Shown here in pieces: positions 1 through 63,939 of a stretch of DNA of 64,000 nucleotides; position 1 is the stretch's first letter; the number at the start of each line of letters is the position of its first letter. Below the pieces are notes generated by a model that ran no database searches, was not told the origin of the DNA, and saw only the letters and a program-made list of their open reading frames with translations. The DNA is from Phaeosaccion multiseriatum. Its lineage: Eukaryota > Protista > Ochrophyta, other classes. The DNA lies in NCBI GenBank assembly GCA_965112735.1, contig OZ218960.1:3224001-3288000 (forward strand), in the 5' to 3' direction. The translations under genes and the position numbers were made by a program.

Positions 1-6405
<6,405 letters not shown>

Positions 6406-6610
6406 GGGAGGAGGAGACATCTTATTGAGATACGAAGACAGAGTAGGTGCAGCAAGCACAGTGACAGTAAATTAAAAGCAAAAAATAATGTAAGGGAATT
6501 GACAAAGGGAAATTGGGGCACCTCAAGGCTCAAAAGAAGGCTTCGTCACTTTGTTGTCTACGGCATGCTCTGCTGAGCACTACGCGAAGTAGCTTATCAC
6601 AGCCTGAGAA

Positions 6611-15119: not shown

Positions 15120-15626
15120 GTCCTGCTGCTGCTGTGCGCAGGCCTTCACTCCCCTCCCCCCCCCTTTCTCATCTCTTTCTCCTTCGCTGTGGGAGCCACT
15201 TCTACTTCTCCTCCTCGTCCGCCTCTTCCTCACACTCTCACGAGAGCCAGGGGATTGGGTGCACATCACTCCCTCTCTCCAACCTCTCTTTCTCTTGTGT
15301 TTTCGTGTTTGGAAGAAAACGTGTTGGCGGGTCAAATTCTCAAATTTGAATATCGAGCGACTTCAAATGTAGAGGTATCTATTCGAATGTCGGGCCCGAC
15401 TTTTGTTCGAATTTGGTCTCCCCCTTGGGGCAGGTGGACAAGCTTGTATATATGGGGCACAATCAAGTACAGGGTCGCCCCATTCGGGCCAGCAATTGGG
15501 CGGGGGTCTAATAAACTGAAACTGAAACTTGGCTTGCAGGGGAGCCCTCAGAAAGAAAACATGGCACCAGCGAGCGGCGAGCCAGCATGCTCTCTGCTCA
15601 CAAAATCTCTTCTTTCTCGTCCTCCT

Positions 15627-30955
<15,329 letters not shown>

Positions 30956-36884: not shown

Positions 36885-38335
36885 ATGAGCGGACAGCAAC
36901 AGCGGAACGAGCCTGGAGGAGGGGCCCATAGCACTCGTAAGTCCGGTGCTGCTTTCTGTCTCCGCCCCTTAACCTATTTGCTGTGGTGAGCTTGCTTCCC
37001 TTGCTCTAGAAAGGCTCGAAGTTATCCAACAATAAGGAATCGCTCCACTCATCCTTCTCCCTCTCCTGATCTCGCTTGACGTGTCCTTCGTGTACTGGTC
37101 CACCGCCGCTGGGTTTGCATCGGCTCTTAAGCCGCTGACCTTAGCGAGCTGCTGATACAGCTGTGCCAAGGTAACGCCTGGCAGGGTAACAGTATCGAAG
37201 CTCTACAGCTGGAGAAGATGCGCGCCCTCGTTGAAGCAGGGGCAGGAGCAGATGCGCTCTATTGGGCGTGCGAGAGGGAGCAGATATGGCTGGCTGCCAG
37301 CCTTCTTGAGTGTGGAGCTCAGGTGGACAGCAGCCCTTCCGCCGGCCAAACCCCTCTCCTCGGCGCGGTGAAAGCCGGTCATCTGGAAGTCGCGAGGCTC
37401 TTGCTGCTATGGAGGGCGGACCTGACCATCCCAGACGGAGTGCGGCACAACTCGCCTTTGGCGTGGGCGCTTGAGAGGGGCGATACCGACATGGTGCACC
37501 TCCTTCTCCACAGCAAGGCGCACCCATCGCAGGGGTCCAGCGTGGTGCTGAGCCACCTTTGCTTCGGCGGGAAGCTCTCCGCCCTCCACTGGGCGGCGAG
37601 TGACGACGAGCGCCTGCCCTGGACGTCCATGCTGCTCGAAGAGGGGGCTGACCTGGAGCAGCGGAGCGCAGGCGAGGGACACACGCCTTTGCTCAGAGCG
37701 GTGCGGCACGATGCCAGGCAAACGGTCCACGTGCTGCTGTGCAGGGGGGCGGACATGTTCGCCAAGGACACGAGTGGGAGCAACAGCTTGAGCACGGCTA
37801 TCCAGATGGGTCATCGAGACATAGAAGGAATGCTGCGAGGTGCGTACGTGGTATGGTAGATCAACCACTGCCTGATGAATAGAGTCAAAACGAAGGGCTA
37901 CTCTGGATCGAGTCCGGCTGGCGGCCTGCCTCGCCCACTGCTCCGCATTGCTCTGCGCCTGCACTATAACCAGCCCCGCTCTGCTGCTAAACTGTCAACC
38001 ACCACCGACTGTTCATCCTCTCTCTCGCTCTCCGGTCCTGGGCCTTCTCGCGGGTTGGCAGTCTTTACAGAGCGGAGGCAGGTACCGCGGCCCTCCTCGC
38101 TGCTTCGGAGTCGGGAGGCCACAGCGGCAACGGCGACTCTGAGTCCAATGACACCCGGCCCTTCACATGATGGCCCTCCCACCGTGGGGGCAGGCGGCCC
38201 GCCGGTCAGCTCCACCCCCCCTCCTGTCTTGAAAAAGCTCACTGGCGGGCTACAACAACCGGTGCAAACGTTTCAGGCTCGAAGGTCATCCTCTCGCACA
38301 CCACCACCTGAAACCGCAGCAGCGTCACCAGCAGT

Positions 38336-41195: not shown

Positions 41196-42443
41196 TCACT
41201 TGGGGAGCCTCTTGGCTGCCCAAAGCGTCTTGACCCCCAACGACAGCATGAGGGCCGAGAAGCCGTACTTCAGCCCCCGCTCGGAAACCTTGTCCGACAC
41301 CACCTTGCCCCCCACGAAGGCTCCCAGTGCGGTGCCTGCCGCCAGGGGAAGCACGATGGGTAGGGACAGACTGCCCCTGCCATAGTGGCTGCAGCAGCCG
41401 GCGAAGGCAGGGAGTATCATGGCTGCCAGTGACGTGGCCACCACCTCTCGGTGTGGCGTGTGCGGAGGGAGGGCGTAAGCCAAAACAGGCACCGTCAGGA
41501 CGCCCCCGCCCACCCCAAAGGCGCCGCTGATGGCCCCGCTCATGGCGCCGAGGGCGAGGTACACGGGCACGGACTCGCGCGGGCCCCCTCGGCCGAGAGG
41601 TCCCACTGTCTCTCCCTCACTCTTCATTCTGTCGTCAGCAGGGCGGGAGTAGGGACCAGCGCTGCTGCCGCCGCCACTGCTTGGCTCCTGCCGAGCTGCC
41701 GACATGCGGGCTGCATAGGCTACGAGCTGCTCCTTCAGCGGCAGGAGGGGCGCCACCACAAGCATCAGTACACCGAGCCCCATCTTGAGCCTCGCCTCGG
41801 GCACGTTGGCCACGGCCCTGGCCCCCAGCACGGAGGTCACCATGCCGGACGCCGCCATGGTGCCTGCTGCCGTAAGGTCCGGCTTGTGCCCGGCGGCGAA
41901 GTAGCCAGCGCTTCCGAGTAGGCCCGTGGCTGGGAGAAGGGCAAGGGATAAGAGGGGGAGGGGGGGGTCAGGGACGGGAACGCTTGCCCCCCCTCTGTTG
42001 CCTTTGCAACGAATTCCCCAGTGCTTGTTGTCGCAACACTCTCATCTTTCTCTCCCTATTCTACTCCCTCTCTCCCCTTTCTTAGCTTAAAACCCACCTC
42101 TGCTCCTCTTGTCCGCCCCACCCCCCCCTCCTCCTACAAACTTGCTTCGCTGCGCACACGCATCCTACTCTCAGGGTACCAGTAAGGACACTGCAGATAG
42201 TAGATGGTACGCTCTTCTTCCTCTACTTCTGTACTTCTTTTCCTTTTCTCTTCCCTTTCCGCTCCTTCCATAAACGTCCTTACCAAGCACCCCCCCGAGG
42301 GCGTTCGCGTGGGCCTGGTGCTGCGTCAGGGCGAGCAGGCTGGTCAGACTGGGGATGGCCACAAACCCACCACCCATACCGACGAGGCTACCACACAGCC
42401 CCGCGCCGCTGCCCACTCCGAAAGCAATCGCCGCCCTCTGCAT
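41196..42443 (-). CDS. TauE/SafE (TSUP) family membrane transporter
   Basis: Exons 42443-42284 and 41929-41196. Duplicated GxxGxGGG motifs (GSLVGMGGGFVAIP; SGAFGVGGGVLTVP), VVATS, multiple TM helices. Confidence 0.88.
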
Positions 42444-42707: not shown

Positions 42708-44244
42708 ATGATTGATACCTTGTCTGGGCTGAGCGTAGTACTCACCGCTGCGTCATGTGTTTTTTGTGGATCGAAACGAGCAGCAAACCAACGGATGTAC
42801 GCAAAGACACATCAAGAGAAGGCCAAGGAAAGTGGGTTTTTGGGGGGCTTGGGTGAGACGGAAGTGCAGGTCGTGGACACGCGTTCTGCGTGCCTCATGC
42901 CAGTCCTGGCCAGCTTCTCGCTCATGGTCCTCTTCTTCTTGTTCAGGTATGCAATACTGCCGCTTCTCTTCTATCACTAGACCCTTTTTTTTATAAAGAG
43001 AAAGTCAGGAATTTTGACGAAGCCAACACCGTCCGTTGAGCAGTCAAAACCCTATCCCTTTTTACTAAAACTGGACTCGCTTCTGTCTTTTCTCTCTTTC
43101 CAGATACATCTCCAGCTTTGTTGTAATCTACATCTCCCTCGCCGCGGGGGGAAGCCTCTGCTTCACTCTCAGCCGACCCCTCCGCGGCCTGCGCCTGCTG
43201 GCGCCTCGCGGCTGTGCCTGCTGGACTGACAGAAGAGCCGATATCCTAGCAATTTTTGTCTCCGCCGGGGTGATGCTCTCTTGGTTGGCAACCGGTGGCT
43301 GGCAGCTTAATGATGTGATTGGATGGTGTATCGGCTATACCATGATCGCCCAAGTGCTACGAATCCCCTCATTGAGAGTGGCGGCCGTCTGCCTTGGAGG
43401 TCTCTTTGTCTACGATGTATTTTGGGTCTTCTTCAGCCATCACCTCTTTGGAAAGAACGTGATGGTGGAGGTGGCAACGAAGGCGGCCTCCAGCCCTGTC
43501 AAGCAGGTGTCCGAGGCGCTGCACCTGCCCTTCAGCAGCTTTCTGGTGCAAGACTTGCAGCTTCCTGTGAAACTCATATTCCCCGACATGAGCGGGGGGG
43601 GCTTCCTCATGCTGGGTCTGGGGGACATTTGCGTGCCAGGCTTCTTCATTGCATTCGCCCTTCACTTCGACACCTTCCTCGCTCGAGCCAAGAGCTGCAG
43701 TAGCAGCGACCAGAGCCTAAGCAAAAGGCAACAAACGAGCACTGCTCGGGAGTTGGACGTGGAGGGGCAGCAGCAGTCGGACGACCCCTGGAGCCCCCTG
43801 CTCACGGAAGAGCAGGGTATGCCACCGGGGGCCCCAAGGAGGAGAGCTACAGCGGCAGGGGCGGGGTCAGAGGCGGGGGGTGGGCCTACCGCGAGGAATG
43901 GCGGTCGTAGTAGTGGTGGCATTGCTGGTGGTGGTGGTGGTGGTGGTGGCGGTGGTGGTGGTGGTGGTGGTGGTGGTGGTGGCGGTGGTGGTAAGCAGGA
44001 GCAGTACTTTCGAACGAGCATGCTTGGCTACGTCGTGGGGCTTATCGTCAGCCTCATCATGAGCAGCTCCTTTCAGGCAGCACAGCCTGCGCTCATCTAC
44101 CTCGTACCTGGTGTGCTGCTCCCTCTGGTGTGGAGAGCACGGAGGGACGGGATGCTGGCTCAGCTGTGGCGCGGCTTCGAGGAGGAGGAGCAAGAGGAGG
44201 AGCAAGAGGAGGAGGAGAACGGGGGCGACGACGAGCGGGTCTGA
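42708..44244 (+). CDS. Signal peptide peptidase-like aspartyl protease (A22B, SPPL3-like)
   Basis: Exons 42708-42946 and 43104-44244. YD (FVYDVFWVF), LGLGD and QPALIYL motifs; poly-Gly insert in a loop. Confidence 0.93.
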
Positions 44245-47667: not shown

Positions 47668-50283
47668 TCTCTCTCTCGCCTTCTCTCTCTTTCACTCACA
47701 CGCCTTTCCCTCTCTCTCTCTCACTCACTCGCATTTCCCTCTCTCTCTCTCCTTTCCTCCACCCCTCTGACCTTCCTCCCGGCAGCGGTTCGAGGCGATG
47801 GCCGAGGGGGAGAGGGCATCACAATGATTCCGGAGGACGGAAACTATGACAGCACCCTTGTGTTCTTGCACGGGCTGGGCGATGATGCTTCGGGCTGGGC
47901 GGGGGCCATGGACAGCTTCAAGCTCGCTCGCACCAAGTTTGTGCTGCCCTCGGCCGAGGCGAGACCCATCACGCTCAACGGAGGTGAGGCAGGCACGCGT
48001 ATGGCAGGCACGCAGGCAGGCAGGAAGGGAGGGAGGGGTAGGCAAGCAGACAGAGTAGGATTGCACTGAATGTGCAGAGGAGGAGGGTTGTGCCGCACCG
48101 CTTAGCGATAAGCTGCACACTGCGGCAGAGGGACGACGCGAGAGTCGGGCATGTGGACATGCAGTAGTCAGTGCGGTAGTCAGTGCGGTAGTTATTGTGC
48201 TTCTTTCTCTCTCTGATCTTCCCACTCTGCTGCTTTCCCCCTTCACCTCGATCTCTCTTCGTCATCTTCACACGCACGCACGCACCCACCTCAAGGCATG
48301 ACGATGCCAGGTAAGTGGGGTGAACACTTGGGGTCGGTTAATTGGGTGCCCGAATGGCAATGGCTCCCGATGCGTCGATGGAGCTGGTGTCCGTGGGGAG
48401 GAGGGGGGGGGGCATAGCTGGTGCAAAAGTGGGGCCACGAGCCCCAAGGACCACTTGCAAGACGGGCTGCAAGACGGGTGCAAGGGTTAGGCTGAGGGTT
48501 GGCGGAGCGGGATGTTTTGGGGGCGAACAAGGGGAGTCGTATCCACTTTCTGCTTAGGGAGGGAGGCCGGGCGGGCGTGCGCGCGTGTGTGCGTGTGTGC
48601 ATGCGGGCGTGCGGGTGTGCCTCTCCTCGTGTGTGCTCCTCCACGCTTCTCGTGCCCCTCCGACCCTCCCTGATGCCTCCGAATGCCTCTCCTCTCCCTG
48701 TTCCTCCTCATGTCTCTCCATGTTCCTTTTTCGTATGCCTCCCCATATTCCTCCAGGCTGGACGGACATCTTCTCCCTCACCGGAGACGCTGAGGAGGAC
48801 AGGGCGGGCTTCCAGCAGGCTGCGGCACGCATCAATGTGAGGGGGGGAGGGGGGGAGGCGGAGGGAGGGAGAGAAGAAGGGAGGGAGGGAGATGCAGAGA
48901 CGGAGAGCGAGGGGGTGGGTTGGAGGGGGGCACAAGTCAGAGAAGGGTGGAGGACAGGGAGAGGGGCAAGAGTCTGCTCTCCCGTGTTCCCGCTTGCACA
49001 AGGAGCGACTGCCTCCCCTTCTCTCTCCCCTCCTTTCTCTCTTCTTTCTCACTCCTCTCTCCTCTCTCTGGCCCTCCGTGGATGGTTTCCAGAACGAAGG
49101 TTGATCCCCCCACCGCAAGTCTGAGTGCATGCCCCACTGCCACTGCCCATACGTATCCTTACGTATCATTCACGTCCGTGTTTGTGTTGCTTGTTGTGAT
49201 GCCCACCTCCATCCCCCTCCCTCTCTCTCTCTATCTTCTTCCTCCCCGTCCAGGACATCATCGATGCGGAGATCTCAGCAGGCATCAAGCCTGAGAAAGT
49301 TGCCCTTGGAGGCTTCTCACAGGGTGGGGGGCTCGCAGTGCACGTCACTCTCAGGAGGGCAACAAGGTCAGGAAGGAGGAAGGGGGGGGACTTGATCGGA
49401 GGTTGGGTGTGGGCAGGCTGGGAGGGGAGGGCGCTCTCGCTGATCTGTTAACCCTATCCCGTTCCATATGCCTCTACTGCTTCTCCGCCTTTATGCCTCT
49501 ATTTGGAATCTCCGGTGTGTGCCGGTGGGTCACAGGCTGGCGGCGTGTGTGGTGTGCTCGGGATGGCTCCCCTTGAGGGATGACTACCCGAAGGAGCTCA
49601 GCGAAGCCGCCAAGAGCACCCCCATCCTGCAGTGCCACGGGACGGTAAGCGCAAGTGTTGCTGTTGCCTCTTCTTCATTAAAATTAAGCAGAGAGGGAGG
49701 CAGGAGGGGAGGAGAGTCTTCTTTTATGCAGGACAAGCGCCTCTACTCTCCGTGCCTGCGTGCCTGCCCATATGCCTATACTCAAACTCTCTGCCCGTAT
49801 GCCTCTGTCTGTCCGTCGCAGGACGATGCCGTGGTGGGGTTCCATTTTGGCCAGCTTAGGTAAGTGTGACACGCTGACCGCAAAGGCCTTGCTCGGAACG
49901 ATCCTGTTGTTCCACTCTCGCGGTGTGTGTGTATATGTATTTTATCCCTCCTCTCTCTCCCTCTCTCTCCCTCTCTCTCTCTCAGGCTGTAACGCTTATC
50001 ATTTGGTCCCTCACGTCACCCTTCAGCCCCACTGCGAATTCGCTGCCCATACGCCCTCACCCCACCCCTTGCGTTGTGCCGTACCGCTGACACCTTTTGT
50101 CGTCGCCCCGTCCCCTGCCATCTCCATCCACTGCCATCCCATCCCCCACGCTTTAGCCACGCGGCCCTGAAGGACGACCTGGGGCTGAATGCGCGCTTCG
50201 AGCCGTTCCAGGGAATGGGCCACAGCGCCTGCGAGGAGGAGATGGCCCAAGTTTCCACCTTCCTCAACGCCCAACTCAAATAG
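47425..50283 (+). CDS. Acyl-protein thioesterase / lysophospholipase (LYPLA/APT family) with a bipartite presequence
   Basis: Exons 47425-47581, 47786-47983, 48296-48310, 48757-48836, 49254-49366, 49536-49644, 49822-49859, 50157-50283. Motifs HGLGD, NGGMTMPGW, GFSQGG, QCHGTDDAVV, GMGHS. Confidence 0.93.
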
Positions 50284-51325
50284 GGAGGGCAGTTGGTGAT
50301 ACAGTAGGAGACGGGAGACAGCTGCAGGCAGTGGGTGGAGGGTGCAGAAAGAGAGCCCTTTCTACGGGGGAGGACCGTTGTGGCAGCTACTCCAGACCCG
50401 TTCAACCCCTTGCTGGAAGCGAGGGAATCGATGCTGGACCTTCGAAGCTTATGACCACGCCCTTACTCAGTCAGTCAGGCTCTGTTGCTGAGCCCCTCCG
50501 AGTCACGGAGGGGAGGGCACTGGTGGAGGCTGCTGGGGGCACGACTTGTTCGGAGCGGCGCAGAGCAAGGAGTGGAAGGGGCACTACACCCGCCTCTCTA
50601 TCTCTCTATCGGTCAAGGCAGCGCGCTTCGCAGGAGTGTGGTGGCGCTTGCCGGGCGTTTGAGTGAGAGGGCCAACAACAAGTCGGGTAGGCAGAGGCGC
50701 TGAGTGTCAAGAGCGGTTGAAACTGCGGCGGAGTACAAGCGTGTGCTCTACGTACGCGAGGCTCTTCACCGCATGGGCTGTGCCTGGGTGGGAAAGTGCG
50801 TGACACTGCTGGGAGGATTACTTTGAGGCCCGGAGTTATTTATGCACGGCAAAAGGAGAGATGCCGTGGAATGGAAGGGTGTGGGGCTGTGCTGTGGTTG
50901 TGCTGTGTCAGGAAGGAAGGAAGGAAGGAAGGAAGGAAGGAAGGAAGGAAGGAAGCATAAGGGAAGCAGCTGCAGCTCGGCAGGGGACGGGAGGGGAGAG
51001 GCAATACAAGGGGTCGGGCATGCTCTGCCTAGGAGGGGCAAGGCAATACCAGGACGAGGACGAGGCAAGCGCCTAGGGCCCGGGGCGGGGCTCGAGACCA
51101 CCCCCGCGGGGGCTGCGTTCTGTCTCCGAGTTGTCTTATCTCTCTGTCTTATCAATCCTTCGTAGTACATACATGTTTGACAGGCATACATACATGATCA
51201 CATGCTTGACAGGCCGAGACGTCTCGCCCAGGCATCAAGAGGCAAGCCTTCAAATGTAAGGGTGTGTTGTGTGTGTGTGCGTGTGTGTGGTCTTACCCGC
51301 AGCACGCCCACTCACTCACACCCAC

Positions 51326-51714
51326 TCACACGGGCACTCGCATCGGCTCATGGCCATGTCCCTGCCCCTGCCCCTGTGAGCCCTCGCCCTCTGGCAATCC
51401 TTCGCTGGGTAGCACCAGCAGCGGTGCCTCCCCCCCCTCCCCCCCCTCCCCCCCCTTTGCCCTTTGAGCAGCGCAGTGCTCTCTGAAGTGTGTCTCAAAC
51501 TTGTCTCTCATGACGGCGTTGATGGCGTAGATCTCAGACCGCCGCCGAGCCTGAGCGGTAGTGCGGTAGTGCGGTAGTGCGTTAGTGCGTTAGTGCGCCC
51601 GTTAGCATGGGGGAGGGGCGTTGAGCGCTCACGAACTTGAGCGTCCGGCATGCACCACAGCAGAAAATGGAAGGAACACGTGTGGGATGCGGTACGGGTG
51701 CTCCCTCCCTCCCT

Positions 51715-51759
<45 letters not shown>

Positions 51760-54104
51760 CCTCCCTCCTCCCTCCTTCCATCCCTCCTCCCTCTCCTTCC
51801 CTCACCTTCTCTTGCGCATGTTTAGTGCGCTGATCCTTCACCTCTTTCCGTAGCTTGAGCGCCTCCATGCTCTCTCTCTGACACAACCTCAAAGCGGAAA
51901 CCTTGGCCGAATCCGCCCTCTCCTGCGCCTTCTCCCTCAGCTCCTCCAAACTCTCATCTGACAGCCTCTTCCGCTCCCTCTCCTGTATCACCAACTGCTC
52001 CGCCTCTTCCTTTTCCGCCTTCTGGCGCTTCTGAAACGCTGCAACACGCATCATCGCGCCCTTGCGGAAGCGGTCGATGGCCTCTGCAGAGCAAGTCGAA
52101 GTCGAGTTGTTCGAAGTCGATGTCGAGGTGTTCGACTTTGAGGATATCGAGTTGCTCGACTTGCCTCCCCCCCTGCTCGCGGGAGCGGGGGGAGCAGATG
52201 GAGACCTTCTCCTCTGCAGCTGCTGCTGCTTGCGACAAGGCCCGCCCTCAGCACCAGCTTTAGGTGATGCAGACACAGCAGCAACAGCAGCAGTAGCAGC
52301 AGCAGCAGCGCTGGTCCTGTCTGCAGAGGAGGCGCGTCGACGGGGGGCTCTGGCTCTGGCTGCGACTGCATCACCAACTTGCTTAGCCGTACTACCAGCT
52401 GCTCCGCTCGTTGAGGCCCGCCTGCGGAGAGCCACAGCGGTGTTCGTTGCTGCTGAGGCCCCCCTTGACCCATGCAATGCTGCTGCTCCTGTTCCTGCTA
52501 CTACATTATTCTTTGCGTTGTTGCCGCGCTTCTTGCCGCCGCCTTCCTTCGTAGCCTCGCCATTTGCTGCCATCCCACCGCAGCCTTCCTTGGGCTCGCC
52601 ACAAGCAGAAGGACCGGGAGAGGGCTTCCCTTCTGCGGAAGGAGAGGGGCAGGGCTCCCCCTCTGCCTCCGAGCAACAAGGCTTCTCCGCTGAAGCTGCG
52701 TCACCTTCCCGTCCTTGCTTGGCCCAAGCCCTAGCCGCAGCGGCGGTTGGTGATGCACCGGTTGGTGATACAGACACAGCAACAGGGGAGGCGGCAGTGC
52801 TGTGAGGAAGTGGCCTTGCGGAAGGAACGGGGTTTCGAATCCGCCCTGAGTCTCTCGCACTGCTTGGGGCAGGGCCGTCTTCAGTCCGCCGAATCTCGTC
52901 GCCGCTGCATGGGGAGGGCTCTACAGCCGCTGTATCACCAATTGCTGTACTACCACCAACTGCTGTGTCACCAACTCCTGTACCGCCATCTACTGTATCC
53001 CTTCTCTGGGGGGTCCATGCGCAGGCTCTCTCTCTGCGGACTGTGAGTGCACCGCCCTTCTGCCCATCCACTGCCATCCCCTCCTGTCCTTCCCGCAGTT
53101 TCAGTGCGCCCCCCCGCCGCCGTGCGTCCCCCCCGGATCCGGGCCCTCGAGGCCGCTGCTCCTCTCCCCCTTGGGGTTGGTCCCCGCCCACCCCTGCTAT
53201 GTGCCCCTGCCCGGCTACTACCCCTAAAGCCTTCCCCCTCCCCCTGCCGTGATGCCCAATCGCCGCCCCCTTCCCTTCCTCCCCCTGAGGCTTGGCGAGA
53301 AGCTCCACCCCCTCCCCTTTGCTCCTGAGGCGGTGGTGGCGGTGGCCGTGGCGGCTGTGGCCGTGGGGGCCGAGGCCGGGCAGGGCCTGCGTGACGTCAG
53401 CGCTGGCCTTGACCCACGCAGTGTTGCTGCTTTGGCTGAGAGCAGCACGCCCACGCGAAATTCTACACTTCCCCTCCTGCTCCTCCTGCCCCTCCTGCTC
53501 CTTCTCCTTGGCCTTCCCCTCTACCTCTTCCTCATCCTCCTCCTCCTCCTCCTCCTCCTCCTGCTCCTGCTCCTGCTCCTCCTCCTCCTCCTCCTCCTCC
53601 TCCTCCTCCTCCTCCTCCTTGTTCTTCTTCTTCTCCTTCTTCTTCTGCTCTTGTTCGTCCTCCCTCTTCTCTGCCTCTCCCCGTTTGTCCTCCTTCTCTG
53701 CAGGACTGCGCGCTGGCCCATGCAATACTGCTGCTACTGCTGCTTCTGTATCACCGACTGCTGCCCTTGGCCCCTGCAATACTACTGAAGCACCAACTGC
53801 TGACCCGAGTGCCGGCACCGCCCCCCCCCCTTCTTCCCGCCAGTCCTCTGCCCCCCCCCCTCGCCCCTTCCCCTTCGAAGGCGGCGATAAAGTTACGGAG
53901 GGTAATGCCCCCTTCTGAGCTTGCTCGTGAGAGTGCTTGTGCTTGTGGGAGTGGTCCTCTCTGTCCCTGTCTCTGTCCCTCCTGCTTGGTGGCGTGCGGA
54001 CGGCTCCGTTCGCTGGTCTCCATGCGTGCGCCGCTGGTGTCGCTTGGGACGGCTTTGGAGCCTTCGGAGCGATGGTCGCTGTCCTCGTCGCTGCTGTATC
54101 CCCA

Positions 54105-54145
<41 letters not shown>

Positions 54146-54984
54146 TGCCTTACTCCCCCCTTTCGAAGAGACAGAGACAGTGCCGCTGCTCCACGCCAAG
54201 AGCGGAGTCGGCCCCTGCCTGTCACTCTGCGGCAAGGGCAAGGTCAAGGGTAAGGGCAGGGCGGCACGGGGGACCGACTCCGCCCTCAACGGCTCGCTCG
54301 CACCACGCAAGGGCTTCGCTGCTGATGCTGGTGCTGAAGCTGGTGCCCAAGCTGGTGCTGAAGCTGCTGCTGCGGGTGCTGGTGATGCTGCTGCTGGTGC
54401 TGCAGCTGCGGATGCTGCTGCTGCGGATGCTGCTGTTGCTGCGACTTCTGCTCGTATCCGAAGGGCCTGTATGCCTACTGCTCCTGCCACCCCTACTCCC
54501 CCCTTTACTATTGCTGGTGCTGCTGCGACGGCTGTGGAACTTCCTCCCGCCTCGGGTGAAGGAGGAGCTGTCGCTTGCCAGTGCGCACTCCGCTCTTCTC
54601 TCCATCGGAGGCGGTTGCTGCTGTAGCGCTTGGCGGGAGGGATATGCGCAAGTTTCCTTTGTGCAGGAAGGCACAGCGAAGCGGCAGAGCGCGGGATCAG
54701 AACGAGACATGCAATTAGAACCAGATGTCGCAGAAGGAGAGAGGAGAGAGGGGAGAGAGGGACGGAGAAAGAGGGAGGGAGCAGGGAGAAGAGGAGAGGC
54801 AGAGGGGGCGGGATAAGAGATAAAGAGACAGAGAGAGAGAGAGAAAATGATCCGCAACTCACTTTGTCGGCGGTGACCACAAGGCGCCACCCGCCAAGTT
54901 GTTGACCGACACCTTTCGGCTTCCGACGATGCATAGCTGGGAAAGCACTTGCACCTGGGCTTGCTGCTGCTGCGAGACTCCCAT
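51326..54984 (-). CDS. Large disordered / coiled-coil protein (~1,070 aa) with a C-terminal SVBP (CCDC23)-like helix
   Basis: Phase-compatible exons 54984-54863, 54656-51806, 51550-51326. The last exon encodes ARRRSEIYAINAVMRDKFETHFREHC. Confidence 0.75.
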
Positions 54985-55691
54985 CGAGGGAGCCATCCTA
55001 TAGGAAAAGCCCCTCAGCTATCGTCTACCCAGCCACCCACACCCCATTCCCCCCTTCCCCCACTTTCCTCATCTTCCCATTTTTATGAAACTGTAAGATG
55101 GTTTTTTTTCTTCTTTCCAGCGACGCCGTGCGGGCCAACGCGACCGGAGAGGAAGAGGTGTATTGCTGATATGACTTGCGGTGCTTTCTCTCGGTGCGAA
55201 GGGATGACCCAGAGCAAGCAGCCCAAGGGGAACAGATTCAGTGTCAAGTGCCAGTTTGCCAGATCCCTGGGGGGTGCGTCCTCTCGATGGCAGTCCAAAC
55301 GCCCCAGGGATGGCAGTCGCTGTTTTGAGCTGATATATCTCACGCAAACAAAGCACCCCGTCGCATACTGTAGTGACTTCTTGAGGCCAGGAGGGAGTGA
55401 ATCGGGTGCATCAGCTTTTGGGAGAGGAGCGTGGTGGGGAGCTTGCTTTTGTTTCTGTTCGCTAAGATATCCTCAAGGCCTCTCTACAGGGGAGAGGACA
55501 GGGAGAAGGGGGTTAGGGGCTGGGGGGAGAAGCAAGCACTTCACTGGGCGGCACTGCTGGGTAGAAGGGAAGGCTTGGTGGTCAGGAGATAAGGGGCGGC
55601 GTAAGTTTTCCCTGCGGCTGGAGAGGCACTCATCATCGAAGGAGAGGATTACCTTACCAAACGGCGGCAACCAGGACTCGCGGCGACGGTC

Positions 55692-58031
55692 ATGAGCGCC
55701 AAAGCAGCAGGACCAGCAGCTCCGGCGACGCAAGCTGCAGCCCCTGCCGCAGTGTCGGGGCCAGCAGCGGCGTCAGCTGCAGCAGGACCGGCTGCCGCAG
55801 AAAGAGCACCAACTGCGGAGACAGGCCCGACACCCGCGATGGCGATCTTGCCAAGGGGGTCTCTATTGGCTCCACGAGGAGCGCCAGCATTAAAGCCGCC
55901 GACAGCGGCCCCAGTAGGAGTACCGAAAGCACCACCAGCAGCAGCGCCCGCAGCAGCTTCGAAAACACCAGCAGCAGCAGCACCAGCAGCAGCAGCAGTT
56001 TCGAAAGGACCAGCAGCAGCACCAGCAGCAGCAGCAGCAACAGCAGCGCCAGCAACAGTTTCGAAAGGACCAGCAGTGCCAGCGCCAGCAGCGGCTTCGA
56101 AAGCACCAGCAGCAGCATCAGCAGCGCCTTCAGTTGTTTCTAAAGCTCCACCAGCAGTGTCCAAAGTACCAGCAGCTCCAGTGGCAGCGCCAGGAGCAGT
56201 CGCGAAAGCACCAGTAGCGGCAGTATCCAAGGCGCCATCAGCAGCGCCAGCGGCAGTATTGCCGAGCATCGGCTCCGCAAAAGCACCGGCGGGGCCATCA
56301 GCAGCGCCAGCGGCGGTGCTGCCGAGCCTCGGCTCCGCAAAAACACCGGCGGGACCAGCAGCAGCAGCGGCAGCAGCATCCAAAGGGCCAGGACCAGCAG
56401 GAGGAGGAGCGCCAGCTGCGTCCGCAACTTCAACGCAGGGACCAGCCGTGTCTCTGCCGGGATCAGCAGCGTCAGTAGCGACATCAGTAGCATCAGCAGC
56501 CGCCGCCGCCGCAGCCGCCGCGTCAGCCGCAGAAGCAGCAGCAGCAGTGGCGGCATCGTCAAGCACCCCCGCTCTCGGCCTCGGAAGGAGGGGCGGTGTG
56601 GACCCTGCCCGACCTCGTAAGCGCGCTCTGTGCACGATAGAGGGCTGCAAGAAGATGGCGCAGCGCAACAAGGTGTGCATCTCGCACGGGGCCACTCGCC
56701 GGTTCTGCGACCATGAAGGCTGTCAGAAGTGGGCCATCCAGGCAGGTGTGTGTATCAAGCACGGGGCCGTCGTCAAGAAGTGCGGGACCAAGGGCTGCGG
56801 CAACCAGGCTTTCCAGGGGGGCGTCTGCATCCGCCACGGGGCAAAGGTGACTCGCAACAGACCCACGTGCCCGATAGACCAGTGTGGCAAGTACGCCCAG
56901 TCGGGCATGAACGGCATGTGCAAGCGGCACGCGCGCATTGAGAAGAGCAAGGCGGGGGGCGGGGCTGTAGCAGGTGCAGTGGGGGCAGTGGGAGCAGCGG
57001 GGGCAGCGACCGCAGCGGGGGAGCAGAGCAACCCCAACGCGACGCCAGGGCAGCAGGGGCCGCAGCAGCAGTTGGTGGTACAGCAGGGGCACCAGTTGGG
57101 GGTGCAGCCGCAGCAGGGCGCAGCAGACAAGAGGCCAGGACAAGCTCCCGGGCAAGGCCCACCCTTGAGCGGCGGCCCCGCGAAGCTCGCGAATGGCATC
57201 CCCGGCATCGGTGGCATGGGTGGTAGCAGCGGGGCCGGAGCTCCGGCCAAGAAGCTGCCCGGGGGGGCGGCAGCGGCTCTCCCCAAGGGTGTGGCCCGCT
57301 CCTTCCCCGGCCCCTCCGCGCCCAACCCCACCGCCCGAGCGACAGTGCAGGTGGCCCGTGCTGCTGCCAGCGCTGCCGCCGCCGCCGCCGCCGCGTCTGC
57401 CGCCGCCCTGTCTGCCGAGAGCCTCAACGGCCCTCCTCGAGCGAAGCGCAGCAAGTTCTCGCACCCGCCGCCTCCCCCTCACAAGGCCAACAAGGCGCTG
57501 CAGTCGCAAGCCATGAGTCGCAACATGGACCTCAGTGCCGCCGCCACGGCTGCTGCCGCCGCCGTTGCGGCCTCTGCGGCGTCCAGTGCCATCTACACCC
57601 CGGCCGCCGCCGCCGCGAGGGACGAGAGCGCTGCCCTCCTGGCCGCTTCTGGTGGTGGTGTCGGGGCTGCTGTGGGTGCGGGTGCGGGTGCCGCTCGGCC
57701 GGAGCTCAGTGCTGCTGCTCCTGCCGCAGCCAAGGCTATGACAAACCCCGCTCCCCCTGCCGCAGCCAAGGCTATTACAAGCCCCGCTCCCCCTGCCGCA
57801 GCCCCTGCCCCCTCCACCACCACCTCTGCCCCTACCGCGGCGGAGGGTGCGGACAAGGACAAGGCCGCAAGTGGCGCGAAAGCCCCCACTGCCCCGAGCC
57901 CGGCGCTGCCGTCGCTTCTCGGTCTTTCCGCCGCTACCACTGCTGCTGCTGAAGGACCGGAGAAGACCGCTGCTGCCAGTGGTGCTTCCAATGCCACCGC
58001 CGCCGCAACTGCCGAGGGGGGGGCGAAATAA
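55692..58031 (+). CDS. Ala/Pro-rich protein with 4 WRKY19-like Cys/His (C-x4-C..C-x2-HG) zinc-finger repeats; putative DNA-binding factor
   Basis: Single 779-aa ORF with CTIEGCKK..VCISHG, CDHEGCQK..VCIKHG, CGTKGC..VCIRHG, CPIDQC..MCKRH and a PRKR NLS-like motif. Confidence 0.85.
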   Translation: MSAKAAGPAAPATQAAAPAAVSGPAAASAAAGPAAAERAPTAETGPTPAMAILPRGSLLAPRGAPALKPPTAAPVGVPKAPPAAAPAAASKTPAAAAPAAAAVSKGPAAAPAAAAATAAPATVSKGPAVPAPAAASKAPAAASAAPSVVSKAPPAVSKVPAAPVAAPGAVAKAPVAAVSKAPSAAPAAVLPSIGSAKAPAGPSAAPAAVLPSLGSAKTPAGPAAAAAAASKGPGPAGGGAPAASATSTQGPAVSLPGSAASVATSVASAAAAAAAAASAAEAAAAVAASSSTPALGLGRRGGVDPARPRKRALCTIEGCKKMAQRNKVCISHGATRRFCDHEGCQKWAIQAGVCIKHGAVVKKCGTKGCGNQAFQGGVCIRHGAKVTRNRPTCPIDQCGKYAQSGMNGMCKRHARIEKSKAGGGAVAGAVGAVGAAGAATAAGEQSNPNATPGQQGPQQQLVVQQGHQLGVQPQQGAADKRPGQAPGQGPPLSGGPAKLANGIPGIGGMGGSSGAGAPAKKLPGGAAAALPKGVARSFPGPSAPNPTARATVQVARAAASAAAAAAAASAAALSAESLNGPPRAKRSKFSHPPPPPHKANKALQSQAMSRNMDLSAAATAAAAAVAASAASSAIYTPAAAAARDESAALLAASGGGVGAAVGAGAGAARPELSAAAPAAAKAMTNPAPPAAAKAITSPAPPAAAPAPSTTTSAPTAAEGADKDKAASGAKAPTAPSPALPSLLGLSAATTAAAEGPEKTAAASGASNATAAATAEGGAK

Positions 58032-62223: not shown

Positions 62224-63939
62224 ATGGACATGGATGATGACGAGCAGCAGCAGGCGGCCATACGCCTCCAAGCCCTGCACCGGGGAATGCGGGCGCGACA
62301 GAAGACGCGACAGCGGCGACAGCTCAAGCAGACGGAACGGGCGGAGCGTGAGAAGATGGCCACACGGCTGCAGGCTCTCAGCAGAGGCAAGAGGGAAAGG
62401 CAGCTTGCGGGGGAGCGGAGGGAGCGGGTGGCCGCAGCCACTGCGATTCAGACCAAGATACGCGCCAAGCAGGCCACCAGAGGAGGAGGCGGGGAGGCGC
62501 TGAGTGGGCCTGGACATTTCGAGAAGCACTCCATCGCACTCAATGGGGCGGACATTAAGAAGGGCCTTCATACGGTGGGCAGGAACCCGCACACGCTCAC
62601 GCACTGCTACACGGGCCTGACCTTGAAGGACACGCACATTGGCAGCATCGCGGCCATTGCAGACTACCCTTTGCTGCAAAGCGTGGACCTCAGTGGGAAC
62701 TGCATCTCTGACCTGCGCCCGCTGGCCCGCCTTCCCTTCCTCCTCGAGTTTAAGGCGTCCAGCAACTGCGTCAAAGAGTGAGTGATGTGATACTCGAGGG
62801 GTCGAAGCGAGGGGCAAGGCGACGAACCATTGCATCACCTAAACTCATTGCTATCTCTCCCTATCTCTCTCCGCCCCCCGTCCCTCCCTCCCCCCCCTCC
62901 CCCCTCTCCCACTCCCCCCCCCCTCTCCCCCACAGACTACCTGACTTGTCGCTGGTACGTGACGAGGATTACTCGTGGCGGGCCTCGGAGGCGGTGCTCC
63001 AGGATTGGCGCAGCGAGCTCGTGCACAGCGTCAGCATGCTGCACAATCTCGAGCTCGACTGTAACGAAATCGAGGTCATCCGCCCCATGCACGAGCACCG
63101 CTACCTGCAGCGCCTGGTTCTCAGCCACAACAATATTGGCAAGATAGAGGGGCTAGAGGGGCTCCACAGTCTCACTGACCTCGATCTCAGCTTCAATCGC
63201 ATCTCCGCCATTGGTACGGCGCTGAGCGGGCTCGGCATCACGGAGCTCAACCTCGAGCACAATGCCATCTGTGAAGTGGAAGGGGTGGACTCCAACCACC
63301 TCCCCCACCTGGCGACGCTCATGCTTGGTCACAACAAGATCACCACCTTGGGCGGGGCCAAGGGCTGTCTGCAGTTGCGAGCCCTGCACCTCGAGAACAA
63401 CTCCATCACACACATCCGCCAGGTGGAGTGGCTCACAGAGTCCACCGCGCTCTCCTGCCTCGTGCTGGAGGGCTGCCCGGTCATCGGGGAGGAGCTGTAT
63501 CGCCTGCGGGTCATCGCTCGCCTGCTGACCCTGCGCCTGCTCGACAGGACAAGCGTGAGCGCAATGGAGAAGGTGCGAGCGCTGAACCTGCAGGGAGGGG
63601 CCGACTCGGACCTGCCCAATCGCATCAAGACGCACATGGAGGCCTTCCGCGGGCCTAGGGGGGCAGGGGTCTGCGAGGGGGAGGAGATGGCAGTGGATGG
63701 GGAGGGCGAGTGCCTCAACGAACCCTTCTACCACGACATGTTGCCCAAGTGAGTGCCCTGAGTGCTGAGGAGTGAGTGGTGGGTAGTGAGAAGGGAGAGT
63801 CGACCATTGGGTACGGCATGCCGGCCACCCAACCGCATGAGTCCCCTCCCTCCCCCCCCGTCACCGCTGCCCTACCCGTACCCGTCTATCCTGCCCTGCC
63901 TGCAGATACGAGGAGCCCGAGCCGGAGCCCATCTTCTAG
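62224..63939 (+). CDS. IQ + leucine-rich-repeat protein (LRRC23/LRGUK N-terminal-like), probably ciliary
   Basis: Exons 62224-62777, 62936-63748, 63906-63939. Three IQ-like motifs, SDS22-type LRRs, and an LRRcap CPV..YRLRVIARL..LRLLD. Confidence 0.85.

Follow-up and report, generated by a model that had tools for sequence, protein, structure and literature searches.

Does the minus strand of a 64,000-nt stretch of the alga Phaeosaccion multiseriatum encode a relative of SVBP (small vasohibin-binding protein, also called CCDC23), the cofactor of the vasohibin tubulin detyrosinases, and if so, is the product a small protein like human SVBP or the end of a very long one? The stretch, hereafter the window, comprises positions 3,224,001-3,288,000 of contig OZ218960.1 (assembly GCA_965112735.1) on the forward strand, and all coordinates below count from its first nucleotide. 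Judged from its sequence, the element in question, a short second exon together with the long open reading frame (ORF) spliced to it, is a divergent member of the SVBP family in a lineage where none had been described before. The reading that we favour, with moderate confidence, is that the locus encodes a divergent SVBP/CCDC23 protein whose helix forms the C-terminal module of a long and mostly disordered polypeptide; this helix is probably a vasohibin cofactor.

Predicted gene structure

The most likely product predicted for the locus has 1,117 residues, with translation starting at the ATG at 54934, running through exon 1 to 51806 and continuing through exon 2 from 51550 to 51329. Exon 1 ends in ...KHAQEK at 51806 and is followed directly by a GTGAGG donor; exon 2 opens with A-R-R-R-S-E-I-Y-A-I-N-A-V-M, and the phase-0 junction keeps the frame (Table 1). 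The intron contains two CTAAC branch-point-like boxes (51593-51589 and 51585-51581, which lie 39 and 31 nt from the AG) as well as a (GGGA)n/(GGCA)n microsatellite, with a tandem repeat at 51701-51803. Its splice signals are of the same types as those of the neighbouring carboxylesterase-like gene, which uses GTAAG and GTGAG donors and a ..GCAG acceptor.

Upstream of the acceptor the exon-2 frame contains stops and no ATG, and therefore the motif can be translated only via splicing. The initial annotation of this DNA had remarked that a mechanical list of ORFs would hide the motif, placed as it is past an intron and upstream of the first Met of its exon, and this is the case: the listed exon-2 ORF begins at 51511, at the Met of AVM, downstream of the start of the motif. 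Contigs from the source sample are identical to the window over 51295-51423 and 51466-51693 and match it throughout the parts compared, which confirms the assembly and shows no insertions or deletions (indels) in the long ORF.

Exon 2 and the SVBP family

Profile searches and AlphaFold2 (AF2) folds were run on exon 1 and exon 2 separately. Exon 2 alone matches Pfam family PF15674 (CCDC23/SVBP) at 27.1 bits (E 4.2e-6; curated cut-off 27.0 bits), with residues 2-33 aligned to profile positions 31-62/63. A phmmer search of exon 2 against all PDB sequences returned seven matches, every one an SVBP chain (E 0.07-0.37), and the alignment to residues 34-66 of human SVBP is free of gaps. Within positions 34-58 there are 12 identities to the human protein (R34, R36, E38, I39, Y40, A41, N43, V45, M46, F54, E56 and C58). 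A gap-free core alignment with these same identities had been put forward in the initial annotation, and the HMMER alignment to 34-58 reproduces it exactly; the search with the CCDC23/SVBP hidden Markov model (HMM), which had been named there as a check, gave the Pfam match reported above for exon 2 alone.

Other methods lead to the same family. A language-model feature search (ESM-Atlas) placed CCDC23 clusters in all of its top three positions (0.88, 0.82 and 0.81). Aligned by hhalign to a profile of 15 annotated invertebrate SVBP C-termini, exon 2 scored a probability of 95.1% (E 3e-8); five members of this profile do not fit the DNA motif pattern described next, which makes this a less circular test. 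The window contains a single match to the degenerate DNA pattern for R-x-E-I-Y-A-[hydrophobic]-N-x-V-M, and 100 shuffles contain none. The pattern also matches 19 metagenome contigs or loci (designated by L numbers where they need to be told apart), 18 of which are SVBP-like by eye. When ten of the 19 were scanned with Pfam, seven reached the CCDC23 cut-off, the best being L007 at 75.8 bits, one was sub-threshold (L010, 14 bits) and two had no match (L008 and L014, the latter likely a chance match to the pattern). On these results the motif is close to diagnostic for the SVBP family. When the window was cut into 1,543 six-frame pieces and searched with an HMM built from the environmental SVBP-like ORFs, exon 2 was the one piece recovered (34.3 bits, with the next at 5.4), a test that is partly circular since its source loci were retrieved using the motif.

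From the Pfam E-value we estimate that chance would produce about 4e-4 matches to PF15674 over the six frames of a ~90-Mb genome, and of the order of ten 27-bit matches to any Pfam family genome-wide; the homology call therefore rests on the agreement of methods and on gene context, not on the score alone. Taken together, these comparisons make it very probable that the exon-2 helix is homologous to SVBP. The core motif ends 60 residues before the stop, and the domain thus sits near the C-terminus as it does in the SVBP family. The tail of exon 1 was considered as the N-terminal half of the SVBP domain (profile positions 1-30) and rejected, its similarity being undetectable; this K/E/Q-rich half is poorly conserved even among true members.

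Vasohibin-contact residues and predicted helices

In the human complex, SVBP contacts VASH1 through hydrogen bonds from Q35, R36, E38, Y40 and N43 and through hydrophobic contacts of I39, A41, L42, V45 and L49, and the double mutants Q35A/R36A and V45A/L49A lose activity (PMC6937246). The algal residues at positions 35, 36, 38, 39, 40, 41, 42, 43, 45 and 49 are, in order, R, R, E, I, Y, A, I, N, V and K. Seven of the ten contact positions are therefore identical (R36, E38, I39, Y40, A41, N43 and V45), L42 is replaced conservatively by I, Q35 by R and L49 by K. I39, Y40 and N43, which the initial annotation had assigned to the binding helix, are all among the VASH1 contacts and all identical in the alga. 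From the columns that are invariant in the invertebrate SVBP set, 6/11 are kept (R36, Y40, A41, N43, M46 and F54), and L42 is again I. The alignment indicates a binding helix whose N-terminal half is well kept and whose C-terminal half is divergent.

The single-sequence AF2 model of exon 2 is helical over residues 2-32, with a predicted local distance difference test score (pLDDT) of ~88-90, and the corresponding model of a 200-residue piece of exon 1 has a helix at residues 107-199 (pLDDT 97-98). The two helices abut the junction from both sides, and a continuous helix of ~125 residues spanning it is therefore plausible in these models.

Four R-R-R-x-S/T sites on the minus strand, namely RRRAST, RRRASS and RRRSPS (window 52230-52520) and RRRSE (51541-51549), resemble sites phosphorylated by basophilic kinases. 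RRRSE opens the SVBP motif, and a phosphate there would fall at SVBP position 37, within the binding helix.

The long upstream open frame

Frame 0 runs for 3,129 nt (1,043 codons) without a stop, whereas each of the other five frames has 10-27 stops. The longest ORF in 2,000 sequences simulated by a first-order Markov model with matched composition had a mean length of 205 codons and a maximum of no more than 471. Downward from 54224 only frame 0 is open; over the initial 700 nt frame 2 is free of stops too, which makes the precise start less certain. The ATG at 54934 is the first after the in-frame stop and lies ~750 nt from the divergent gene.

The exon-1 ORF is of low complexity and has a disorder-type composition (A 18%, G 10.5%, S 10%, E 9%, R 8% and P 8%, with Y at 0.1% and F at 0.5%), and no Pfam family was matched along it. 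A (CCT)n array on the plus strand, at 53473-53619, overlaps its poly-Glu block, and the stretches that adjoin the helix are basic, at +5 to +9 per 60 residues. These features point, somewhat more strongly than not, to a mostly disordered protein of ~1,100 residues. When the 164 C-terminal residues of the long ORF were used in a word search of proteins of 574-1825 residues, nothing was returned, not even the ORF itself. Among the contigs of two other organisms in the second of the two studies that we compared, only (GCT)n trinucleotide repeats match the locus, at 80% likeness.

Alternative interpretations

Several observations weigh against a long SVBP-family protein, and they bear on three other explanations. 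Its expression and the 51806/51550 junction are predicted: every sequencing run in which the locus turned up behaves as DNA, and no RNA run was among them. The main rival is a short product from an internal start: a real SVBP homologue that is a small protein, made from an internal ATG or a separate transcript and excluding the upstream Ala/Gly/Glu-rich sequence. Met codons at 52054/52051 would give ~157 residues, and those at 52573 or 53077 would give ~330 or 500. GC content at third codon positions (GC3) is heterogeneous across the long ORF, at 0.2-0.5 in its Ala-rich parts versus 0.77 in confirmed exons, and codon-usage scores are atypical over much of its length; typical coding GC3 (0.72-0.77) and positive codon scores begin only near 52240-52100, and the confident helix begins at ~52087, just ahead of the Met-Met at 52054. 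Low GC3 was nevertheless dropped as an argument against coding, since the adjacent, Pfam-confirmed and likewise Ala-rich WRKY19-finger gene has the same low GC3 (0.59), and the codon-usage model, for which five exons in the window confirmed by Pfam served as training set (GC1/2/3 = 0.64/0.48/0.77, by codon position), is too weak to settle the start site. A run of the same organism from a second study differs from the window by no indels. It matches fully over 51824-52226 but has six differences over 52320-53058, where the four single-nucleotide polymorphisms (SNPs) listed are all non-synonymous in frame 0; this pattern fits a fast-evolving disordered region and equally a short product of the last ~160 residues. 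A small SVBP-like ORF does exist among the environmental loci (L008, 147 residues). What a small protein leaves hard to explain is frame 0 itself, which, if untranslated, would hardly be expected to stay open for ~800-1,000 codons upstream against 10-27 stops elsewhere; the long ORF also runs on to the helix with no in-frame stop between them, and long extensions are the rule in invertebrate SVBPs. We regard the small protein as a minor possibility that deserves to be kept in view.

The remaining two explanations concern the helix itself. It might derive from SVBP or resemble it and yet not bind a vasohibin, having another partner or forming part of a long single helix or coiled coil. The invertebrate-invariant residues Q35, T47, E50 and F57 all differ in the alga and the contact residue L49 is K; Pfam found no vasohibin domain in the 1,043-residue ORF or in ten other ORFs on both strands of 52035-55733; and trypanosomatid vasohibins function without SVBP (PMC11761321). 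Identity at all of R36, Y40, N43, E38, I39, A41 and V45 is, on the other hand, not expected without selection for the same interface, and we consider a non-binding helix improbable. Chance resemblance in an untranscribed or non-coding stretch would in turn account for a PF15674 match of ~30 residues that meets the cut-off and is marginal (27.1 vs 27), given the very many windows scanned, among which our estimate from the E-value leads us to expect some 27-bit match to some family. It would also suit the lack of a close relative. An exhaustive phmmer search of exon 2 against 1.84 billion representative proteins gave nothing at E<=1e-3, a result expected because the match spans only ~30 residues in so large a library, and one from which it follows that no predicted protein in that library contains exon 2. 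A word-index protein search with exon 2 (candidates of 41-130 residues) gave no match, and a protein-guided metagenome scan gave 599 pattern matches with 0 confirmed. Also counting against the favoured reading, the exon-1 tail had no CCDC23 match at E<=10 and reached 0.4% in hhalign against the SVBP profile, and phmmer of the exon-1 ORF against the 36 animal proteins described below and 9 environmental ones yielded only composition-biased scores (<=2 bits). Against chance stand the convergence of several independent methods (Pfam, PDB phmmer, ESM-Atlas and hhalign) on one small family, the low number of matches to that family expected over the six frames of the whole genome, and the setting of the motif, which keeps the frame across an intron with canonical donor, branch point and acceptor and lies close to the C-terminus as in true SVBPs. 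We judge a chance match very improbable, and continue with the long protein that ends in an SVBP-family helix.

Surroundings of the locus

The locus lies between a convergent carboxylesterase-like gene, which ends at ~50283, and a divergent WRKY19-finger gene, which starts at 55692. The former (47824-50283, plus strand) is a multi-exon gene that resembles, by eye only, an acyl-protein thioesterase or phospholipase/carboxylesterase, with the motifs ..LVFLHGLGDD..GW.., ..ILQCHGT.. and ..GMGHS.. The latter (55692-58031, plus strand) encodes a 779-residue Ala-rich protein with WRKY19-type zinc fingers (PF24906, 46 bits), and a 574-residue antisense shadow ORF overlies it. Near the start of the window there is an inverted duplication (98-6417 and 15615-22000) of ten collinear arm pairs that are 96-99% complementary; the arms are at least 6.3 kb each with ~9.2 kb between them, and either a genuine palindromic duplication or an artefact of fold-back assembly could account for the structure.

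Table 1 Coordinates of the predicted SVBP-like gene and of the exons used for codon-usage training
Feature	Position in window	Strand	Description
Exon 1 open frame	51806-54934	-	1,043 codons from first ATG after in-frame stop at ~55000
Poly-Glu/acidic block	53525-53674	-	net charge ~-25 per 60 residues
Long charged helix	51806-52087	-	final 94 residues of exon 1, reaching the splice junction (predicted)
Intron	51551-51805	-	phase 0, 255 nt; donor AAG/GTGAGG, acceptor CTCAG/G (predicted)
Exon 2 coding part	51329-51550	-	74 codons; stop TGA 51328-51326
SVBP-like alpha-helix	51455-51547	-	exon-2 residues 2-32, aligned to human SVBP 34-~63; from PDB alignments, AF2 and hhalign columns 2-30
Core motif R-S-E-I-Y-A-I-N-A-V-M	51509-51541	-	holds vasohibin-contact residues R36, E38, I39, Y40, A41, N43, V45
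SMCHD1 S5-like domain exon	26634-27539	-	Pfam; codon-usage training
Ankyrin-repeat protein exon	37131-37856	+	Pfam; codon-usage training
TauE/SafE exporter exon	41199-42041	-	Pfam; codon-usage training
Signal peptide peptidase exon	43069-44241	+	Pfam; codon-usage training
Leucine-rich repeat (LRR) protein exon	62754-63749	+	Pfam; codon-usage training

Proposed role and significance

If the favoured reading is correct, the algal helix would dock into the groove of the alga's own postulated vasohibin, as human SVBP does with VASH1/2, and docking would stabilise or activate tubulin detyrosination. The ~125-residue helix and the charged disordered extension might tether or localise the enzyme, a role that would parallel that of the long N-terminal extensions of invertebrate SVBPs. 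The initial annotation had proposed a protist vasohibin-SVBP module: the part of it that stands is the SVBP-family helix behind a well-formed intron, and the part that the locus does not support is the enzyme, as no vasohibin lies within it.

A broader scenario, which we offer as speculation and think rather doubtful, is that the vasohibin-SVBP pair, with the SVBP helix on a long disordered tether, predates animals and arose early in eukaryotes. In that case the vertebrate SVBP of 66 residues would have been reduced from a longer form and the autonomy of trypanosomatid vasohibins would be a secondary loss, and the charged extension of 1,000 residues in the alga would direct detyrosination to certain microtubules, for instance those of the flagellar axoneme.

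Vasohibins are reported to be widespread in eukaryotes except fungi (PMC4866520). In the literature that we searched, SVBP is treated as a small animal cofactor and is mentioned in algae only for the VashL locus of Chlamydomonas; vasohibin and stramenopiles are not combined there, and vasohibin and diatoms co-occur only through citation. A stramenopile SVBP, if true, would place the vasohibin-SVBP pair's origin far beyond the animals and would provide a handle on tubulin detyrosination in heterokont flagella. The contribution is incremental and not a new mechanism. The observation that non-vertebrate SVBPs are long and carry a conserved second box, detailed below, may be of more general use; we met no description of either in the literature, though no search was aimed at them.

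Comparison with known SVBPs and vasohibins

Human SVBP (66 residues; PF15674; PDB 6J4O, 6NVQ, 6OCF, 6LPG and others) resembles the algal sequence in being a single helix that aligns to it over 34-58. The difference is one of context: the whole human protein has 66 residues, whereas the algal helix ends a predicted protein of ~1,100 residues and has behind it a Gly-, Glu- and Gln-rich tail of 40-odd residues.

Animal SVBPs outside the vertebrates are closer in layout. A search with the coral-like environmental ORF L007 found 36 proteins of 280-637 residues, most with PF15674, from Porites, Acropora, Oculina, Nematostella, Mytilus, Dreissena, Pecten, Asterias, a chiton and others, several of them named 'Small vasohibin-binding protein' in UniRef (for example 462 residues in Porites, 448 in Nematostella, 513 in Asterias rubens and 551 in Dreissena). 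The annotated invertebrate SVBPs, from corals, Nematostella, bivalves, a chiton and starfish, have 430-560 residues and a Met start; disorder-promoting residues make up 70-77% of the sequence and the motif lies 19-33 residues from the C-terminus, the one exception among the long proteins being a probable mis-fusion with a small GTPase. As in the alga, their long extension contains no other Pfam family and leads into a PF15674 helix at its C-terminal end. They share, moreover, a second box 60-100 residues before the helix (..[VI][YF]LSE.[QH]SG..PCAPP.TPT..EY[IV]PS..D[VL][KR]SQR..), which has no Pfam family of its own in our scans and is also present in the environmental ORFs L001, L006, L007, L015 and L019. 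The alga differs in having no detectable similarity to this box, in an extension twice as long and in a motif that ends ~60 instead of ~20 residues before the C-terminus. Homology of the algal extension to the animal or environmental extensions was rejected, phmmer having detected no similarity.

Environmental eukaryote ORFs of 200-470 residues (L001, L006, L005 and L018) show the same arrangement of a helix after a long extension. In L010 (266 residues; TARA and JGI contigs, beside a LIS1-like gene) the SVBP core likewise follows a charged helix; it differs from the algal protein in its shorter length, in an acidic tail after the helix and in its sub-threshold Pfam score. The contigs of this marine sequence are compact and densely packed with genes, which makes a protist the probable source of L010.

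Two further observations concern the environmental loci themselves. At 3592-5444 of L020 (also in L021-L023), a 147-residue SVBP-like ORF with no Pfam match overlaps by 4 nt, in another frame, the end of a 470-residue ORF that is also without Pfam match, and the pair may belong to a single longer gene interrupted by a short intron or by a frameshift. L003, L005, L011, L013 and L017 share a conserved lead-in, ..REPVF..DVRTQNTRLVTPRQ, and a C-terminal end, ..YDIFM; their genomic contigs have an intron acceptor ~10-13 codons before R34, a position unlike that of the algal intron.

Among protist systems, the closest parallel in an alga is VashL of Chlamydomonas reinhardtii (Cre05.g241751), which is reported to align with both VASH2 and SVBP from humans and whose knock-out lowers axonemal detyrosination (Nat Commun 2025; PMC11770126). 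Both algal loci have an SVBP-like stretch inside a large protein. VashL aligns to VASH2 as well, in contrast to the Phaeosaccion locus, where a vasohibin-SVBP fusion of this kind was rejected since no vasohibin (PF14822) region lies between the flanking genes. The vasohibins of trypanosomatids (T. brucei and Leishmania) are autonomous, and their genomes are reported to lack an SVBP homologue (PMC11761321); they share tubulin detyrosination in a protist and differ from the alga, which has an SVBP-like gene.

Set beside these systems, the initial claim of a cofactor at the end of a ~1,000-residue scaffold holds insofar as the 1,043 stop-free codons exceed chance and have a disorder-type composition. 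Tethering as a novelty does not hold, as invertebrate SVBPs of 430-560 residues and the environmental ORFs share the layout. A long extension before the SVBP helix is, on these comparisons of predicted proteins, the usual non-vertebrate form, and what the Phaeosaccion locus provides is a new lineage for an already known family and no system of a new kind.

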